A stretch of DNA of 64,000 bases from Ascidiella aspersa (taxonomy: Eukaryota), in contig OZ004612.1 in NCBI GenBank assembly GCA_963924565.1, forward strand, positions 12,338,001 through 12,402,000. The letters run 5' to 3'. The notes beneath the pieces were generated by a model. That model had not been told where the DNA came from, ran no database searches, and was given only the letters and a program-made list of their open reading frames with translations. Each line of letters begins with the position of its first letter. Position 1 is the stretch's first letter. Positions 33,788-45,700 of this stretch are shown in pieces. A program made the translations under genes and the position numbers.

Positions 33788-36700
33788 CGGGCTGCCAGAT
33801 CTTAAGTTGCTGGGTAAGGTCGACCGGGTTCGTGGGTACATTGATGTCGCCAATCCCACTGATGACAGGCAGTCCCACGTCATAGCCGGGATTCCCGGAT
33901 CTCTTAACCCCTTGCTGGGTGAAGTACTGGGACTCCACCGCGAACGATTGGGTAAGTAAGTTGTTGGGTGGGATACCTATATGGCGAAAAGAAGGTATTC
34001 AAATGCATTTTCGTAGGTGTTTGGACATTTTTTTTTCTGGATCTAAAAATTTGACGCAAAAGTAATTGTTACGAATTCGCATATAACCTCTATACTCTAA
34101 AAATGTTCCGTTTTCACAACAAATTTAGTTGTCTATGTTGTTTATATTCGTTTTGAATTGTGGTAATCCAAATTTGGAAACATAAATATCAAATGCAAAC
34201 ATAATTGCTCTATTAGCAAGTCAAAGAGTAAATTACATGAATTGCAACAATACTCTGCCATTTATATATATATAATGTCCAGTGAATGTTATGCAATGAA
34301 CGAAAAACAAAGCGACAATTTGTACAATTTTAATATAAGTCGGTTATTCGTCCGCTAAATTAATATAAAAGTCGTGCTCTTCTAGTTGTTCTAGGCTTTA
34401 TAAATTTGTATGGAAATAATCGGGATTTTAATGTATTTTTTGGATCTCACCAGGCGTCTCAACAGCGCCCGTCAGCGGAACGTCGGCGACCACCACTCGC
34501 ACGTCCAGGTTGGTGACGAGGTTGCTTTCCCACGTCATCACGTACGTCACACTGGCGACAGCGTTGGAACAGTTGGAGCCGGAGATCGTCGGCGTGGGCG
34601 GTTTCGCTATAAGTTGGTCGATTGATGCTGCAAATAGAAGAAAGACAAATGTCAACATTTAAAACTAGATAGTAGTATAGGGCTAAAATCTATTATACCA
34701 TGACGTCACATTTTGTTTACATTTCCAGCTCTCAAGTAAATGTCCCGCTAAAACAGAATCTACATACCGACCCCCTTCATGTCTGAAAATTAAAAGCCTC
34801 TACGATTTATAGTTTTTCTGTAAACTCTCGACAAAAAAACGGACTGAAACAAACCAAAAAACAATCTATAACATAATTTAAAACCAAAAACAACTTTGTC
34901 TTAAAATCATCAGTACAATTCATAAAAATACGAGTACGGTCACGATTGCATCAGGCGTAATAGTTTAGAAAATAATGTTTAGTAAAATGTGAAATGCATT
35001 CGGTTCTGCTGCGAATTGCGCCAAAACGTGCAGTTTTCGTCAAAAATACAAGATTGTTTTAATTTTAATACTACCTAAGTCTGAAAACAATGTTGCAGTT
35101 TTGCACTGGGTAAATTGACACGTTCTCATTTCGTCTCGAATCGAAATTCGGATAAAATATTCACCACTCGAAACGCGAAACCGTAATTGCAAAATTAAAC
35201 CGCTCTTAAGCAGTGAAACACAAACGCGATTTCACATAAACAACGTAAACGGCCTAAATTGAGTTAAAAAGCGACACACGGGGAGCCAAGGCGAAAAACG
35301 GGAAAGCGCATTCCAGAAAAGCAATCAGAGCGCATACCACCTGTGTCACGTGATTTTACACGAGGATTTTTTTCTCCCGACGCCATCGCCGGGATTTTAC
35401 TTTTACTTGCCTGCACTGATCTGACACAGAGTCTCGCGTAGACTTGTCTTTTATTTTTGCATCGAATCGTTTTGCTGTGCGCCGAAAACGAGTTTTACTG
35501 CTCAAACCTGAAGTGGAAACGTTTTATTCCTGGTCCGTTGCTGATCTATAGTTTATTGTTGCTTTTTGCCAACCTGGAAGACCTTTTTGCTCGCTGACGA
35601 TTTTAAGGCAATTTTTTAAAAAAGTTTTATTCTTTACCGCACGCGTCTTAATTTCAAGGAAGAAAGGCTATCTGTGCTAAGGTAAGGCTGCTGAAGCAGT
35701 ATTTAACGGACCAAGGCTTTGTAAACAGTGGGTAGAATGTTTAATATATTTTTTTACGTTATAAATATTTTAATTCCGGCGTGTAAGCAAACTTTTAGGG
35801 CAGCTTTTTGAAAACAATTGCCGTGGTTAGATAAAAAACCTGTGCACATAACTCAAAAAAGCCTTTTTAATGATTTCGTTTGGGTTAGGCATAATTCCTA
35901 CATATACAAACTCTGTTTTTTTGCCAACTTTAACATTAAAACTGCAAAAATTTTCAGCGCGAATCTTCTAATTCCCTTTGAAAAAATACACGGTATCACC
36001 GCCCAATTAAATTAACTTGTAGATAAACGATAAAAGCTATCGCCCTTTCGCGGACTATTTTTCAACCATATTTTATATTTGATAACAGGCTATAGCAACA
36101 GGGGGAGTCGAACTTTTTTGCGCGAAACTATATTGTTTTTTGCAATATTGCCGTTGTATTGTGTGTCGTTACATCTTTTGAAACACGATAACGCAATGTT
36201 TAATATTTGCGCTTGACATTTTTTGCGCTCGACATCGTGACAACTCTTACAACTGCGGAATAAATGCCTTCGCAACACGTTTATCAAAATCAAACGCCTC
36301 TTCGGTTGCAGTTTAGCCAATTCGACCAAATAAAACTCAATTTTTGCGCGACCAACAACACCCTTCACTATATTCCTGTTTTCTCGGTGATATTTAATTG
36401 CAAAATGTCGAAATATTTTCATAGGGGGGGCGCAAGGCATGAGAAAATTAAGGGGGGGCGCGGCTGAAAAAAGGTTAAGAACCACTGGTTTAAACTAACA
36501 TGTTTTGTTAAATGCCCATATTTATAAAAACTTTACTAATTTATTACTATGATATTTTTAGGTGTCGACAGATGGCGATCGAAAGCCGTTTTCGGACTCG
36601 CGGCGGTTACAGTCACGTGACCCCGTACAGCCGGCAGCAGTCGAATAACGGCCGCGTGGTGTCGCACAAGCCACCGGCGCCAAGGGTCGGCGTCGGGCGC

Positions 36701-39700
36701 CAGGCACCCACTGTCTCGTACGCCTACGTGGCGGCGCAAAGGGGCCAGTCGCTAAAGGCGTCGGGAAACCACCCTTGCCCGCCCCAGACAAACTTGGGGG
36801 CGCCCCCGATGATGCCCCCGTGCTCACAGGTCCAGGGTATTCAGGTTCGTAGGCTTGGTGTTTGTTTAATGAGAGCAGAAACTCGTCCGATGAAAAGAGT
36901 CTCGTGCAAAACGAGTTCAATTAAATTAAGTACAGGGTTTGACACGGCTGCTTTCGCGATTTAAATAGACTATTTTTTACACAGCTGTTGCCAGTTTGAA
37001 TTTGCCAAATAATTCCTTTCATTGTTAAGTATAGTCACGGGATTACAAGGCCGACTGCAGAGTAAGTTGTTCGGTCGTAATGCATGCACTGTACAAGTAT
37101 ATTCGGAGTGCTTTCGAAATTAACTTTTTCAAAAACTAGCATTTTATCGTTATATTATGAATAAAGAACGTTTTTGAAAGTTATACCGTCGCGCTCATAA
37201 CCAAAAAGTCCTTTTTTACTGATTTTCAAAGTTTTTGCTTCAGTGCTCCTTGTTGCCATCTCCATGCATCAGTCATTTGTTTGCACAAGCTCATGAAAAA
37301 TGACCTAAAAATGATCCAAGTACTTTTTCTGTGGATGGTGATGGTAACAAGAAGTGACTGAATCAAAAACTTTGAAAATCATTAAAAAATGACTTAGGCA
37401 ATTTGGTTATGAGCGTGACGATACTTAACGTGCGCGAATTTTTTCTAATAATGGTTCCGGTCCAAAAACGGATAAGTACCCCGAATTTAGGTACCATAAA
37501 AATGCATGAAATAAGTGAGCGAGTGTATGATTTTGTATCCTGCATTTCGTACGTCGTTTATGTTGTTTTTGAGCTCGTGAAACTTAAAATCGAAACTGAC
37601 CAAACTTTGGTGCGCAGGCCGCTTGTGCGCCAATGACGCAGTTTAACGCCGGCGCCAACTTGACCTTCGTTGCCATGCCAATGACCCTGCCCCCTCCCAT
37701 CTGCAACCAGGCCGGGCTGCCACAGTTCGGACGGCTTTACGAGGAATTCGACAGGATGAAGGTGAGTAAAACCAGTTTGCATTAAGGCAGTGGCCGGAAA
37801 TTTTTATTTATCGCAGCTAAAAATGATCTTTCAAGATCTTTTGAAGGCCCTTACGTGAAACGAATGACGTAACAAAATTACGCCATAAAACCATTAAAAT
37901 TAAAAAAAATCTTGGGTGCAGTGCGAAAAGTTTAGTCTTGTTTAATTAAAATTTACCATTGTAGCGTTTAAATTTACATAACAAAACTCAAAATATTAAA
38001 AAAATCACCCGCGGCCCACTAAAATTGCCAAAGGCCCAGATTTGGGCCTCATCCCATTTTAATATTACTAAGGTAATACAGTTATATCCAAATTAGGCAC
38101 CTAACATGCCATACGTTTGTACTTGGTAATAGAACACGCATATTTTAAATAGTTTCTCAATCTTTCAAATAAGCTTTCACCACTTAACAGTTAAAGAGCA
38201 AGAAAGTTATGCATTTCGCCAAATAGACTAAGATTTATCAAAATGTGTCTTAAATGTTTTCCAGAACAGGGGTTGATTGTTTTTCTAGAACTATGCATTA
38301 CAACACCGCGTGCAAACAATTTGCAAACGATTTATTCTTAATCTTGTACACAGAGAAACGGCTTCGTGGTTCAACCGCGGCCACTCCAAACCCCGACACC
38401 TCCACTGCCCCCGCCCGCCACAACAATGGCCCCACCTGCACAATCAGCAGCACCAGTAGCGGGCGCAGAATTCGTAGCCCCAAGGCCGCTGTCTAGGGTC
38501 CCGAGCCCGGTTCCGCCCCCTATGGGGCAACCTCAACAACAGGGGCAGGGGCAGGGGGTTTTCCCGGCCGGCGAGGGTGTGTTCACGACGGCGATGAAGC
38601 TGTTTATGCATTCCTATATGCCAACCGCCTGTTTCGACTGCACGGTGCCGGTCGACGACTGGGGTAGAGAGGCGCAGGCCCTCATCGCCGAAGTCATGAC
38701 GGTCGGATGCGCGGGACGCGGTCAGCCTGCCAGGTTAGTTTTAAATCAGTGTTTGTCAACCTATATAGATTGCGATTGAAAAAATGATTTCTTTCCAATC
38801 CGTGCGGAGGAAAATTTTGCTTATATAAAAAATTCGACCTTATTTCTGCTAATGACAAACTGACTGTAAAATATCGAGATATCCTTACACGTAAATGACG
38901 ACGATGACTTCAAATGGAAGCAAATATTCTTTAGACTTTCCGGTCTTAGTCAAATTCGGTCATTAATAATTTATAGCTATTTAAAAAACAAGACAAAAAC
39001 GCTTTTGTGGCGAAATATTTATTTACGCTAATTTCTTCTGGTTTCGTTCGCTTACAAAAAGCTTCGGTTTAAACCTTAGTTTTTCAGTCGTGCCAAGGTG
39101 GAGAAAAACAATTAGGATTTTCAGGTCGGCTCTTCAAAAAGCGCCCGTTTTTTAACGCTGTTTTGGTCGGTCTGCTTTAGAACCAAGGCGGTGACTAGAT
39201 TTTGCTTTCGTCGAACTTTAGGCCAGTGTTTCTTAAACAGGTGAATGGTTCACCCCAGGGTGAATAAAATGTTGCAGGGGTGAATAAGGGTAAACCGTAA
39301 GAAATGGATCATAGCTTTTGCAGTAAATCGAAGTCATTTTATGCTGCTATATATATAGACGAGATAGTTTCATCACATCATGAGACAAGGGTGAATGAAA
39401 TCTGGAGATAGATGCTAGGGGTGAACAAAACTAAAAGTTTAAGAAGCATTACTTTAGGCGTTGAATAAAGTATTCAAGATCGGAAGGCCACGCGAGATAG
39501 AATACAGAGGTCCAGTGGTATATCCACCCTTTTTAACTTAACGACGCTCTATGGAAAAGTAAAAATTTATCGGCATACATGACCATAAGAAACCGCACCC
39601 CAGGAAACCACCGGCATAATACATGCCCAGGAAAAAAAACAACACATGGGACATGGGTGTAAGCAGTCCTAGCGGTCACTAAAGCTAGACCTCTAGAAAC

Positions 39701-42700
39701 AAAATGGGTGCGTGGATCTCCATATATTTTTGGCTTCTTGGAGTTTGACATTTAGGGCGCGATCACGACCGGCGGGACGAGTCCAAAATAGACCGTTTAC
39801 GACTGCGAGGACTTGTTTTTCACAATTACGCACATTCCGCCTGGAAATGTCACCACGTGTCCCAGTGGGAAGCCGGAACCACAAGCACGCCGTAAGCGAT
39901 TTGTGTCGTCGCTTCACGACGTTTGCAAAAAACGTAAATTTCAAAGAGAATTTTCCTCATGAAATGTCAGCGTAACAAAGGTTTTTTTCAAACTGATCTG
40001 ATTTGTATTGCTGTTTGTCTGGTTTCCCATTTTTTCCCTCTTGAACCGTTTCACTTCGGCTCGCACTTTATTAAATGGAATGGCAGGAAACTCGGTCAAA
40101 AAATAAGATAGTTAAGTCCGGAAAATCGGCAATGGTGTTAGATGCAGAAAATGATAAAATCATGTGTTTGGTAGTATGTTTAGTTCACATTGAACGATCG
40201 TTTATAACAAACGCGCCAATATAATACCCCTGGAAAAGTTGGAATAAGAGAACCGTACAAAATGCCTTTATTTCAACGAGCTTTTCAAAACCGTTACCGC
40301 AGGACGCACAAAAGCTCCTGGCCGGAATCTGGCAGCCGGAACGCGTCATCCGACTATGACGTCACAAACAGTAGCTCGTCGTCAGGGCCCAGCCCGGACA
40401 AGGGGGTGGCCCCTGGGTGGCTGGGGGACCCCCTGCAGAGGATGGACATCCACCGGCACATTCTGGAGATTAAGCCGTCGCCCTACCCCGGTGGAAGCCC
40501 CTTATCTGTTCCGTCGTTGGCGAGCGGCCATAGCAGCGACAATGACGCCGATGACGAATCCGCCGCGTCATGCAACAGGTGGGTGACGTCATTAGGTCGC
40601 ATTGTTTTGTAGCGAGAAATAGATCTACCAGTCAAGCATTAAGCTTTAGTGATTTTTTTGACGAAAAGCGGTATTAGCTGTAATAGTGTACGCCAGAATC
40701 ATTGCTTATTTTATTATATGGGCCGAAAATTAATATTCGAGACAACATGTTTTTCCCGTTATTCTTATTTGGTTTGCTATGCCAGAGAAGCGTTTAACTT
40801 TATTTTTTGTGGCAAAAAGCGGTATTAGCTGTACTAATTGTACGTCAAAATGGTTGTCCACAATTTTAACTCCCAAAAATATTTAAACGAGGTAACGTAA
40901 CTTATTTTTTAACCTTTGTCAATTTTTTAATTTTCTACATTATAAAAAACAATCCACATTTTAATTACACAATAAGTTTTTACAGCAACGGTGTGCAAAA
41001 CTTAGGACCAGCTTATATGGTTCATATACGACTCAAATGGTTTGTACAAACAATCTTTATCTATTCACAGCAGCCCCGCCTCTCTGGCGCCGCGCGTGTC
41101 CGGCAACAGCACGGTGCGACGACCCTCGTACAAGAAAAAGCACGACTCGGCACGCGTCCGCCTCTCAATGGACTCCGGCTACCAGTCGTCTTCCACCGAC
41201 GGGGGCAGCTCGTGCCACGGTGGGTGATCACGTTTTATTCAAAGAAAACTAAATGTTCGAACATTAGTAAACTGACACGTATCTGCTTAAAAGGGTGTAA
41301 CGCTCTTGCGAGGAATGTAATTAACAGCAAACTAGCAGTGCGAATGGTGGATTTTTTTCTGGTTAAGTAAAGAAAAGTAATGGGTATGCTTTAAATCGAT
41401 TTTGGTTGCTTAAATTGATTATATGGTCGTTTTTTTCGCGAAAGTACAGTGCTTGACAAGTTTCTGTTTGAAAAGGTGTAACTAACTAACAGTAGCAGCG
41501 CGATTAACGAATGTTTTTTGGTTTTAGGCCGAAGTTTTTTTTCCATTAAAAGCGATATGTTTTTATCGTTTTTGTTTATACAAATTAAAAAAACATTATT
41601 TGCCGCTTCTATTCCGAACTTATACACTTTTAGATGGTTCAACACATTTGTTAGGAGTGCGCCCTAGAACAATTTAAATTACTGGATACTTTTTATTCCA
41701 AAAAAAAACACCAACGCTTTTTCTTGCGAGGGATGTAATTAACATCAAACTATTGCAGCGAGATTATTAGTTTTGGTGTAAACTTCGTAAAGCATTAACC
41801 ACGATCAATAAAGGTAAAATGTTCGAAGCAAACTGAAACGCCGTTTCTGTTAAATGTGGAAGGCTTTTTATCGCATTTGTTCGCAAAAATTAAAAAGCCA
41901 ATAACATACTCTTTCTGCTCCAATTCCGAACTTTATATAAACTTTTATATGGTTCAATACATTTGATTGACTTACCGAATACTTTTTAACTCTAAAAAAT
42001 CTAGTTTTAAGGCGGAATAGATTAGATTTCTATTTTACGGCCCACAACGACATTCCACACTAAATATGCCGCTTTTAACTAAAACCACGCCGCTCAACCC
42101 TAGCTGCATGTTCGGGATGTTTTAAAGGCAGCCAGGCGTCAGCATGCTGCTTAGACTCGGATGGCTTCTCGTCCGATATCGGCTCCTCCTGCGGCTCTTA
42201 CTCCTCATCCTCCTCTTCCCGACCGTCTTCCCCCACCAGAGGGCGCGACGAGCCGCAGTTTTTATCGCCTACCGAAGTGCCGCCGTACCTCAACGCCCTA
42301 CTGGAAGCCCCCTGGATCGAGAAAAAGGCCCCACGGAAAACCCTCCCGACCCCTACCCCACAACTGAAGGTCTCACACCCCGTTTCTGGCTTCGAAAAGC
42401 CCCAGGGGCAGCCCACCGCCGTCCCCGAGGGGGCGTACACGTACCACAAGCACAAGGAGTGGATTACCGACGAGATCCTGGAGATGATCGTTGTACGCGA
42501 TCGGCTCTACAAGCGCATGAAGAAACACCCGGCGCCCGACATTGTGGACATGTACAAAAAGGTAAGGAACGCCCCTCGGCCGCTTTTTGAATGTTTTAGG
42601 AGTCTTTGTTTAAATCTCAGCCGAGATGGGTGTTGTGAAAATTGAAAAATTACTTTGATTATATTAGAAACTGGTTTGATATTAACAAGAACGTGAGACG

Positions 42701-45700
42701 CCCTGGTTTTGAAACTCAGCTGAGATGGGTGTGTGTGAAAATTAAGGTTTTAGGAAAAAAAAAATACGTTTTGATTATATCAGAATTCAGAAACTAGTTT
42801 GATGGAAACGAACTTGCACCGATTTTCTCAAGTGAAAATTGTCGAACCGTGGCCCTTGGAAAGTTTTATTGAAAACGAATAATTATTTAGTGCCTTAGAC
42901 CTCGCGTATTTAGTGCCTTAGACCTAAAATATTGATTGAATATGTTTTAAACAAGTGCCACAGATGTTTTCCTCATTTTAAAACCTGTTAATTTTTCAAA
43001 CGATTAAAAAACCAAACAAAATGTCGTCCTAGGTCCGCAACATGGTAGTTGGCATGACGCGCAACGCCAAAAGGGCGCACGAGAAAAGAATCGAGGATAT
43101 GCGCTCCGGGGCGCCGTCTGCCGGTGGCTACAATAACAACAACGTCTACCACTATGTGGCGCCCAAGTACAGGCGGCTTTCGTCAGGATCGAGGCGAACG
43201 AAGTAACTAAGGTCGACCCATTATTATTACAGTAGTTCTGGCTTTTATATGCGTGTTTCGAGCCGATTTAGAAGATATTATCTTTATCTATTCTTATTAT
43301 TCCCGTTGCGTGCTCGCTTTTTACATTTTGCGTTTTATCGTGACCCTTGCATGCTCCTGTCCGGATTACCTTTTTTGCGTTTTGTGTTATTTTTTGCCGC
43401 AGAGTTTTATTGTTTCTTTTGAAGCGCGAAGCATGAACATTATTATAAACGGTGCATGAAAAAAATGACTTTCAATGTAACAAACCTGCCAGTCAATAAC
43501 TTGTATATACAAAAGACAAACTTACTTAATACTCAATGTTTGGAAAATATCTCCGGAAGAGAAAAAAATTTCTAGTCTATAATTAATTTATATCTACATA
43601 AGACAAACCTGTAGTAGATGGGGTGAAAAGACTGTTTGCAGTGCTTGTCCCTTGACCGCTATTAGTCTTCACGTAGTCGGCGGCTTGTCCGCGAAAGTAG
43701 GAAACCTGGAAAAGTTAAAACCAAAAGTTTGAAGATCTAATCTACTGTAACTGGACGCACGAGTCCAAATCTACTTCAACATTAGCTCGTAGTTTAATTG
43801 GCTCCGGACTTGTCCCCTGCCTATTAACAAAACCTATATAGTTGGCACAATCTGTCATTTAAATCTCCATTTTGACAATAACAAAAAAAAAAACGATCGC
43901 AGTAAGTGAACCTAAAATAAACGTGACTAGGGTTCGGCTATGTCACCACATAATGAGTTACGGTAGTAAAGACCTTCCCTTTGGAAACAACAGATTGGAT
44001 TCAATTTAGGTGTGCTCTGTAACGAATGCTTTCAAACGCTTTGCATTTATTTAACAAAACAAGAAACATTACATTAACGGCGGCATTCCCGCCAGAGGGC
44101 GCCCGCAGCACCAGGGTCGTGTTGGTGACGTAATAGTTGACGTCAAGAAGAGAACCGGCCAAACAGTTTGTGGCAGCCGACACCGAAACCTCGCAAAACA
44201 ATGAAGAGCTATTCTGAAACGCCACCAGCGAACTGCGAAGGCATTGGCCGGTGAGGGAAGCCTGTAAATAAAGCAAAGCCGACTGAAATAAATTTACCTT
44301 CTATTTTATCAACTGCACAGCTATGTGGCCGCTCAAAACAGTCGGTTTCTTTTAGAGGCCGAGTTTTCCCTAATTTTAGCAAATAAAAGAGGATGATTTA
44401 ACACAGTAGTTAAGAAAAAGCGTTCTGGCTATCCATAAAATTAAGATGAGTTTACCCTTTTCTAATAAAACCATTCATTTTTGGGCTATGCCGAACATTT
44501 TCTTATTATCGTATTGCCCATAAGTTTAAAAAATACGTCCAAACCAGACCTGCGTAAACTACAACCCATTTTCAATAAAACTATTAGAGGAAAAAATAAG
44601 CCTTAACACCTTTTTTTTTATTTTAGAATATTATACATTACTCTTGTTAGGTATCCTCACCTATCCTATATACTCTTGCCAGCTTCTCAAAACAAGGCAG
44701 GGCGTAGCGTGGGGGGGTGTCTAGGAGTCTTGAACACAATTAAAATTAAAACACGTGACATTCGGAAGTGAATGAGTCAACGAGGTGTTGCGTTTTTCTA
44801 GCGAACAGGCAATTTTAAACAGCCGTATGCTACTAATAATCGCTGTTTTCAACGTCTAGAATACACGAAACGTAAAAATTTAATAAACTGTCCGAAGCGG
44901 CAATGTTTTTAATGTGATTAGGTCACGAGTCTTAAGCTAATTCGAAACCAAAATAAAACGCAAAATGCCGTTTTTCGTCTTTTGTTTGGTCGAACGTAAA
45001 CGCAGGATATTTTTTCTCTTTCGTTATTCGTTCAGGTTGGATATTAGCAAGTGCGTATTCGACAATTGACAACGCTAAGACAAACCTTCTTTCTTTTTTT
45101 CTTGCTAAAAACGTCGAGTTAGGCAGCTAATGGTCCTCGCTGTTCACTGTCTGCGCTAATATTCGATGTTGGTGTAACAACTGAAGTAGTTTCCTTAACG
45201 GTGAACTGTGACTGTCTTGCGCGTTTCAAACTCGCGATTTTTATGTTATGATAATTACCGCAAAATTTTTCTCTGTAGTATACTCTGAGACAGTGATTCC
45301 CAAACTGTGTGCCGCGGCACAACAGTGTGCCTCGAGAGATTGTCAAGTGTGCCATAATTTCGGAGAAGAGAGTATTTTTATCACCAATAGGCATACACAC
45401 CAGCATTTTAGACTTAAATACGCACTATTTATTGCAAATTAATAGTTTTGAGAGATTTACATATAGTTTGTCGTGTGTTAAGGGCAATTGTAAAATTACT
45501 GTATTGTTCTTCTGTTAAAAGTGTGCCGCGAAATAGTTAAGATTTTTTTAGTGTGCCGCGAGCCATAAAAGTTTGGAAAACACTGCTCTAAGACCACGTC
45601 TTTAGTGTACGATTGCACCTTATTTTCCATCAACAGCAGCTTGTTGTATTTTGCTGACTTGGCACACTGCTCAGCAGATGTTGCGATAATCGACACCCGG

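Follow-up and report, generated by a model that had tools for sequence, protein, structure and literature searches.

The subject of this report is a gene on the + strand of a 64,000-nt stretch of DNA from the ascidian Ascidiella aspersa (assembly GCA_963924565.1, contig OZ004612.1, positions 12,338,001 to 12,402,000). We refer to the whole of this stretch as the window, and all coordinates are positions in it; the source genome is 308 Mb. The gene is the orthologue of Ciona LOC100183225, a gene for which our literature search found no paper mentioning it, and of proteins annotated as 'uncharacterized' in Phallusia, Styela and Clavelina. The protein of Phallusia mammillata (CAB3262780.1, 587 aa, P0008 below) maps to the window as seven exons. 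These proteins are 490-590 residues long, Ser/Pro-rich and predicted to be largely disordered, and at their C-terminal end they carry a module that we take to be homologous to the linker between endonuclease and reverse transcriptase (RT) in the second open reading frame (ORF2) of one clade of long interspersed nuclear elements (LINEs). The reading we favour, at a probability of about 75%, is that a host gene captured this linker hairpin, that an intron was gained afterwards, and that the hairpin has been kept as a conserved C-terminal domain. The exons of the gene and the parts of the module are as follows.

36572..36844, + strand: coding exon 1, an open frame to which residues 1-80 of P0008 map (36572-36835).
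36844, + strand: 3' end of exon 1, placed by the GT after the open frame and outside the region examined for RNA reads.
37600..37761, + strand: coding exon 2, with a conserved motif; RNA joint 37761/38354 (GT..AG); P0008 maps to 37642-37761; 5' end approximate.
38354..38710, + strand: coding exon 3, Pro-rich and then a conserved motif; RNA joint into 38354; P0008 maps to 38351-38707; 3' end approximate.
40290..40578, + strand: coding exon 4; RNA joint 40578/41071; P0008 maps to 40301-40570; 5' end approximate.
41071..41219, + strand: coding exon 5, with RRPSYKKK and DSGYQSSS; RNA joints 40578/41071 and 41219/42128; 88% identity to P0008.
42128..42561, + strand: exon 6, the penultimate coding exon, a Ser/Pro-rich disordered part and then the start of the module; RNA joint 41219/42128 (phase 1), translation and P0008.
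42448..42561, + strand: module part 1, made up of the KHKEW lead-in, helix 1, a turn (PAP) and the beginning of helix 2 (...DIVDMYKK); placed by a hidden Markov model (HMM) of LINE linkers and by hhalign, with helices from AlphaFold.
42562..43032, + strand: intron of 471 nt, phase 0, GT..AG, within helix 2 of the module; from the sequence, and at the same position in the related locus L066.
43033..43098, + strand: module part 2, the remainder of helix 2; placed by a fixed-register score on the LINE-linker HMM.
43033..43206, + strand: exon 7, the last coding exon, with a TAA stop at 43204-43206; translation, RNA depth and residues 537-570 of P0008 (43033-43134).
43207..43450, + strand: 3' untranslated region (UTR), end approximate; RNA depth 18.6 over 43251-43450 and ~1 over 43451-43650.

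Stranded RNA sequencing (RNA-seq) reads from the same species cover the exons on the + strand, and confirm the three GT..AG joints 37761/38354, 40578/41071 and 41219/42128. For a joint to be listed it had to be carried by at least 3 reads, and about 6% of the run was examined. Depth peaks on the last exon and the 3' UTR, being 16 over 43051-43250. Dips in RNA depth were considered as a sign of other exon ends and this was ruled out, as the orthologue spans the dips and the individual that gave the RNA is polymorphic with respect to the reference. The polymorphism includes a serine run of exon 6, where five of nine reads lack three bases at 42201, an in-frame length difference in the disordered part of the protein, and also single-nucleotide differences, synonymous or unclassified, at 42231, 42340 and 43149, the last of them TAC to TAT.

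Exon 6 ends with the codons AAA AAG (to 42561) and exon 7 starts with GTC CGC AAC (from 43033), the frame having been read by translating 42145-42561 and 43033-43206. A preliminary description of the window, made from the sequence alone, had proposed that a module resembling a LINE linker is split here by a phase-0 GT-AG intron at 42562-43032, and both frame and intron read as it gave them. With regard to the splicing of this intron, the alignment of P0008 to the window breaks precisely at 42561/43033, and the proteins of Ciona, Styela and Clavelina run without interruption through the corresponding segment as ...MYKKVRNMVVG(M/L)TRNAKR.... There are also at least 9 unspliced open reading frames (ORFs) in other assemblies in which similarity ends directly after YKK, and in one of these, P0004, similarity resumes after a 20-codon in-frame stretch at YKK that resembles an unspliced intron; in the species of P0004 the intron is apparently about 60 nt. 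Comparisons across the junction used natural database proteins (P0008 and others) or scores for each exon. The 42561/43033 junction is, as far as aligned sequences go, supported through the orthologues.

The module (56 residues) is 80-93% identical among full-length orthologues from different ascidian orders, and the remaining protein is 26-45% identical. Comparison of window and L066 by codons, exon by exon, gave a proportion of synonymous differences (pS) of 0.74, which is saturated, and of non-synonymous differences (pN) of 0.069, for a pN/pS of ~0.09. A closer pair of loci, L069 and L070, gave pS 0.166, pN 0.026 and pN/pS 0.16. Judging from these ratios, the module is under very strong purifying selection. 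It is basic, with ~16 Lys/Arg to ~10 Asp/Glu and a net charge of about +6. When modelled by AlphaFold with an alignment of host and LINE segments, the host module has a helix at 15-33, a three-residue turn and a second helix at 37-76, with a mean predicted local distance difference test score (pLDDT) of 89.9. When the whole Phallusia protein is modelled by AlphaFold, the only region predicted with confidence is the hairpin (pLDDT 89-97), and elsewhere pLDDT is below ~55 on a shallow alignment, except for short helices at the conserved motifs. The picture of a hairpin that caps a long disordered protein, as given in the preliminary description, is that of the model.

The module is not a copy of a LINE element: it is single-copy, and is without endonuclease and RT flanking it in one ORF. 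Both exon pieces were found to be single-copy in the 308-Mb genome by sequence and profile searches, the other matches being LINE linkers at E >= 2. When the LINE ORFs of at least 350 aa in the genome were compared with the window by tblastn, none gave a match below E 0.06 and the best match was the module itself, and the genome-wide list of PF14529 hits has none inside the window. In Pfam searches with five exon pieces and ten orthologue or LINE proteins no family covered the module (E 1-10 or better). A search of PDB sequences with P0004 gave chance matches only, in part on intron read-through, with no match to L1. The possibility that the module is the basic region of a bZIP-like protein was considered and ruled out, as it is not followed by a leucine zipper and gives no Pfam match.

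The case for homology to the LINE linker comes from searches made in both directions. A HMMER search with the module profile against 1.84 billion protein representatives gave 36 matches with E <= 1e-3, mostly orthologues and host-type proteins, and in the same search P0036, P0037, P0038 and P0040, with E from 1.1e-4 to 6.8e-4, are LINE fragments. P0037 aligns with an intact ORF2 of this genome over 257 aa that include endonuclease and linker (E 4e-18), and P0036, P0038 and P0040 match LINE linkers at 1e-10 to 1e-14. When the genome was searched with the profile the best non-self match was L035 (E 2), a decayed LINE fragment reading ...KPWITKGILKSIKVKNKMF..., in which the linker is directly downstream of the SDH end of the endonuclease; its family has at least 58 copies and includes several ORF2s of ~1000 aa. 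In the other direction an HMM made from ten natural ORF2 linkers (Z = 1258 targets) gave scores of 23-48 bits for 15 host proteins (E 1e-13 to 4e-6) and of 24.9 bits for the exon-6 ORF of the window (E 1.3e-6); the best of the 1243 other ORF pieces of the window scored 10.8 bits.

Comparison of profiles by hhalign gave the same result. Ten host modules aligned with the linkers of this genome at 94.6% probability (P 7e-8, columns 6-57 to 6-57, score 40.4), where 200 column shuffles gave scores of 9.6 +/- 2.3 with a maximum of 21.7, and host modules aligned with five database ORF2s at 97.1% (P 7.5e-11, 59 columns). Each of the two alignments keeps the register, with one gap at most, across both helices and the exon junction. 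The first half of the module is sufficient to give 94% probability (P 1.2e-7), and exon 7 held in the fixed register after YKK reaches +6.6 bits, the null being -14.8 +/- 6.0 (P ~6e-4). When host and LINE sequences are aligned together, W and I are invariant, and K, L, Y, K and N nearly so. The database ORF2 proteins, which carry PF00078, PF14529 and PF03372, were gathered with a LINE query instead of the module because circularity had to be avoided. Two examples will serve for the position of the hairpin: in the ORF2 P0056 the APE endonuclease is at 97-310, the hairpin Trp is W399 and RVT_1 is at 607-853, and in the ORF of L057 the hairpin (~353-415) falls between an Exo_endo_phos endonuclease (61-207) and the RT (564-808).

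The genome has a LINE family (L036-L065) with the linker KPWITKGILKSIK...YK.YNNKLT.IK..AKQ.YY, which is a homologous hairpin of equal length and register that shares with the module the anchors W, IL, (L/F)(Y/F)K, YK, N and AK. These LINEs are multi-copy and intron-less, and have the hairpin flanked by endonuclease and RT in an ORF of ~1000 aa, whereas the module of the window occurs once in the genome, is interrupted by an intron and lies C-terminally in a host protein that is largely disordered, and is 17-20% identical to them.

The structural parts of what the preliminary description had proposed have each held. The ORF2-linker homology that it named was recovered by HMMER (E ~1e-4), by the linker HMM (23-48 bits) and by hhalign (95-97%), and its statement that no endonuclease or RT is nearby agrees with the negative tblastn and PF14529 results for the window. 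That the gene is a host gene and not a LINE is borne out in that it is single-copy, multi-exon, expressed, conserved across ascidian orders and under purifying selection. It had also looked to orthologues with the same intron and to selection on the module, and we find the intron at the same position in L066-L068 and a pN/pS of 0.09.

There are several points that weigh against capture of a LINE linker by a host gene. The exon-7 part (second helix) alone was not significant against the LINE profiles in free local alignment. Foldseek against PDB found just generic hairpins, in designed proteins and ribosomal proteins, and no L1. Two other LINE families of the genome gave by hhalign an in-register match in the second helix only (P 0.014) or none, and because these families are weak or null the similarity is confined to one LINE clade, the RT box of which presumably resembles those of CR1-type elements. 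A precomputed Pfam accession newer than the library that we used, PF28493.1, is attached to the orthologues P0009 and P0015; it could not be looked up and may name an existing family. In the RNA-seq of this species the joint 42561/43033 was below the 3-read listing threshold. The direction of transfer, from LINE to host, is one that we infer, and the timing of the capture and the biochemical role discussed below are likewise read from comparisons.

Some of these points are what would be expected if the module were an unrelated cellular hairpin that resembles the LINE linker by chance or by convergence, given the limited sequence space of short basic amphipathic hairpins. The structure search with its generic hairpins, the second helix that alone is not significant, an identity of only ~20-35% to any single LINE, and an E of 2 for the first LINE match in the genome-wide profile search are all on the side of this explanation. 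We nevertheless regard it as very improbable, as it would have to account for an alignment that keeps its register over ~52-59 columns with no more than one gap and that has invariant W and I in common, for an hhalign score of 40-54 where the column-shuffle maximum is 21.7, for significant LINE matches among 1.84 billion proteins, and for the P of ~6e-4 in exon 7 at fixed register. Furthermore the LINE linker had been named beforehand, from sequence alone, as the target to look for.

In the case of the RNA joint, more than half of the RNA reads are only 95-99% identical to the reference, and for this reason, and because ~6% of the run was examined, we discount the missing 42561/43033 joint and treat it as an issue of coverage and polymorphism rather than as counter-evidence to splicing. 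The exon 3/4 joint is likewise absent from the list of RNA joints. The earlier claim that 42561/43033 is spliced therefore stands on the orthologue proteins and on the intron of L066, and has not been seen among the RNA joints with at least 3 reads. The same missing joint is what might be cited for a decaying LINE fragment, under no selection, that annotation pipelines have read through. This is barely credible for a module that is single-copy, is the best-conserved part of the protein in the four named species and in several other sequences, has a pN/pS far below 1, and is in a last exon with the highest RNA depth in the gene.

With regard to direction, the homology could be true with the transfer reversed, a LINE having taken up a host hairpin, or both could derive from an older domain. 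In favour of this, host-type modules are in at least 5 sequence groups, so that the host family could be old. However all the members examined, which come from the genome and from unrelated database sources and include one from a moth, have the hairpin as an integral segment of ORF2 in the interval from endonuclease to RT, and in human L1, which is a distant LINE, this interval has a 'tower' with a hairpin of helices (PMC10830420). The host modules are ~60% identical to each other and 20-35% identical to those of LINEs, a pattern that fits one derived host clade, and the named host orthologues are all ascidian. We thus find a reversed or shared origin distinctly unlikely and continue with capture by the host.

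The introns within the module are informative in this regard. At L066-L068, which represent a second species, the sequence is AAG/GTAAGC...CAACAG/GTG CGC AAC (slashes mark the intron ends), which is a 337-nt phase-0 GT..AG intron at the same codon boundary as in the window. In contrast L069 and L070, which are JGI metagenome contigs, read TAC AAA AAG GTG CGT AAC, without an intron at YKK/V, and have instead a phase-1 GT..AG intron of 44-46 nt between IL and E of ILEMI (L069:245-288 and L070:3959-4004). P0017, a spliced relative in the L069/L070 lineage, is contiguous across the position of the ILEMI intron. Because LINE ORFs are intron-less, and because the positions differ between the two host lineages, the introns inside the module must postdate the capture, as the preliminary description had suggested for the window, with the direction of capture taken as above. 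This points to independent intron gain within a retroelement-derived module in separate lineages. As LINE ORFs are without introns the two positions can be treated as unambiguous post-capture gains, and are therefore examples of datable intron gain in retroelement-derived coding sequence.

There are some further observations on these introns. P0021 and P0022, of the L070 lineage, depart from the other sequences directly after YKK, to TLPNVSV and TLCCR respectively, which suggests that AAG/GTGCGT may be used as an alternative donor in this lineage; the product would probably lose most of helix 2. In the window the intron starts with GTAAGGAAC (42562-42570) and exon 7 with GTCCGCAAC (43033-43041), both of which encode V-R-N, so that for three residues a frame read on through the donor looks like the genuine continuation. 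This likeness is likely to be due to the donor consensus, an origin of the intron by duplication being the alternative. The 471-nt intron includes direct duplications (42609-42785 and 42884-42929) with a spacing of ~100-116 nt and a 23-nt tandem duplication, and its sequence occurs nowhere else in the genome.

We suggest the following sequence of events. An ancestor of the ascidians, or possibly of a wider group, would have taken up ~60 codons of the ORF2 of a non-long-terminal-repeat retrotransposon (a LINE), the part captured being the basic alpha-helical hairpin between APE endonuclease and reverse transcriptase. The hairpin would have been joined on at the 3' end of a gene of the host, with the enzymatic parts lost or never included. 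It would then have come under strong purifying selection, and introns would later have been inserted independently in each lineage, in ascidians in phase 0 at an AAG/GT site after YKK, and in the other lineage in phase 1 within ILEMI, at IL/E. As the only stably folded element of the protein, the hairpin would most likely serve to anchor a regulated disordered scaffold to some partner that is itself conserved.

We favour anchoring to a conserved macromolecule because the module is basic and nearly all of its residues are conserved. As to the partner, a structured nucleic acid is the candidate that we would put first, at somewhat less than even odds, and a protein surface is a possible candidate that we would put second, with a smaller chance left for a partner of some other kind. 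It is unlikely that the hairpin, as a domesticated equivalent of the ORF2 tower, still recognises the target of LINE towers, which would be either a conserved factor of the host or a structure of nucleic acid where target-primed reverse transcription takes place.

A role against retrotransposons has also to be considered, with the hairpin as a dominant-negative or decoy that binds ORF2p or a tower cofactor in trans. Human L1 depends on its tower for retrotransposition and not for RT activity, and pieces of the tower base may associate in trans with the rest of ORF2p (PMC10830420). The genome of the window also has related LINEs whose ORF2 is intact, and a suppressor role has been suggested for other host proteins that derive from LINEs (PMC12129022). 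However a module identity of 80-93% across ascidian orders, with pN/pS ~0.09, is the opposite of the rapid change to be expected in an arms race, and the present-day LINE hairpins of the genome share only 20-35% identity with the module. A role of this kind seems to us quite improbable, and a conserved partner in the cell accounts better for the slow evolution than would a sensor of retrotransposons, which should evolve fast.

A near counterpart among known systems is the tower of human L1 ORF2p, residues 239-440, which follow the APE endonuclease and precede the RT (Baldwin et al. 2023, PMC10830420). It has two long helices forming a flexible hairpin, is needed for retrotransposition and dispensable for RT activity, and its helices are mostly unmodelled in the solved structures (PMC10830420). 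The hairpin of the matched LINE clade is like it in being in the same interval of ORF2, non-enzymatic and presumably of two helices. The equivalence is positional only, as neither the PDB search nor Foldseek gave a sequence or structure match between L1 and the module.

Co-option of LINE proteins is rare; of the cases on record, L1TD1 and Lyosin come from ORF1, and BCNTp97 comes from an enzymatic part of ORF2. L1TD1 and Lyosin, the latter a fusion of MYL4 to L1 ORF1, are vertebrate proteins derived from ORF1p, an RNA-binding chaperone (PMC12129022). The gene in the window is like them in that LINE coding sequence has been co-opted as host exons, fused to host sequence and placed under purifying selection, and differs in the ORF2 origin and in being in tunicates. 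BCNTp97 is, according to PMC12129022, a ruminant-specific paralogue of bucentaur with an enzymatic part derived from the ORF2 of RTE-1. The likeness is that a host protein has incorporated part of a LINE ORF2, and the differences are that we have here a non-enzymatic hairpin of ~60 residues, an event that would predate the ascidian radiation, and introns that came later. Conserved ORF2 fusions are said to remain to be elucidated (PMC12129022), and our literature search found no report of a domesticated ORF2 linker.

The case would thus be one of an old and strongly conserved capture of a non-enzymatic hairpin, a piece that hosts seldom retain. The hairpin has persisted throughout the radiation of the ascidians, and this implies that it binds a conserved partner, which could be sought in Ciona, a tractable model. 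The counterpart region of L1 is essential for retrotransposition by a mechanism that is not known (PMC10830420), and if the hairpin is equivalent to the tower and still recognises the same target then the cellular copy would give a tractable handle on the role of this region in LINEs. The module also defines an unannotated domain family, and is a first handle on an uncharacterised and mostly disordered tunicate protein.

Outside the named orthologues a closely related module, KHKPWMNQDILEMIDIRDKLYRRMKK...YKKARNAVVSLTRAAKRNY, is present in a group of Asn/Gln-rich proteins of 230-700 aa (P0025, P0026, P0027, P0029, P0031 and P0033). This group shares an N-terminal SYTDD..F..K...FWG, and some of its members end C-terminally in NWPSLR or DWPALK. 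Because its module is ~60% identical to the ascidian module, the host family may extend beyond the tunicates. P0032, of 175 aa, has two tandem LINE-like hairpins without endonuclease or RT, and may be a separate capture.

In the remainder of the protein 9 orthologues have an unchanged D-S-G-Y motif, after which a Ser is conserved, and the window copy is the DSGYQSSS of the exon at 41071-41219. The consensus of the beta-TrCP phosphodegron is DSGxxS. A second motif, LDSDGFSSD, is near DSGYQSSS (41071-41219 / 42128-42200), and both fit the DSGxxS pattern, which suggests that turnover of the protein may be dependent on phosphorylation. Other conserved motifs are an acidic run SDNDADD(E/D), a KKK patch, PSPYP.GSP and LPxFD.LY..F..MK.

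With regard to other LINEs of the genome, 30 loci picked by PF14529 were tried as the source of the match and set aside, as neither the exon pieces nor the exon HMMs matched them; they belong to other LINE families. Three tandem copies of a different LINE, ~2 kb apart, were noted at G000:C5:15713638-15721355 (L004-L006), with the RT box ITPIHKKGPKNLKENYRPISLTS and the linker KPRWCNKQIERARNKKLRKW...YKRATNNLTNMIRKYK.

Lastly, the intron between exons 3 and 4 includes at 39224-39448 a dispersed repeat of ~215 bp, for which an Rfam search gave no match. Over this repeat the word-depth summed by contig rises from ~50 to as much as 92,000, and RNA reads map there to either strand, their loose ends being at 39223/39224 and 39436/39448.

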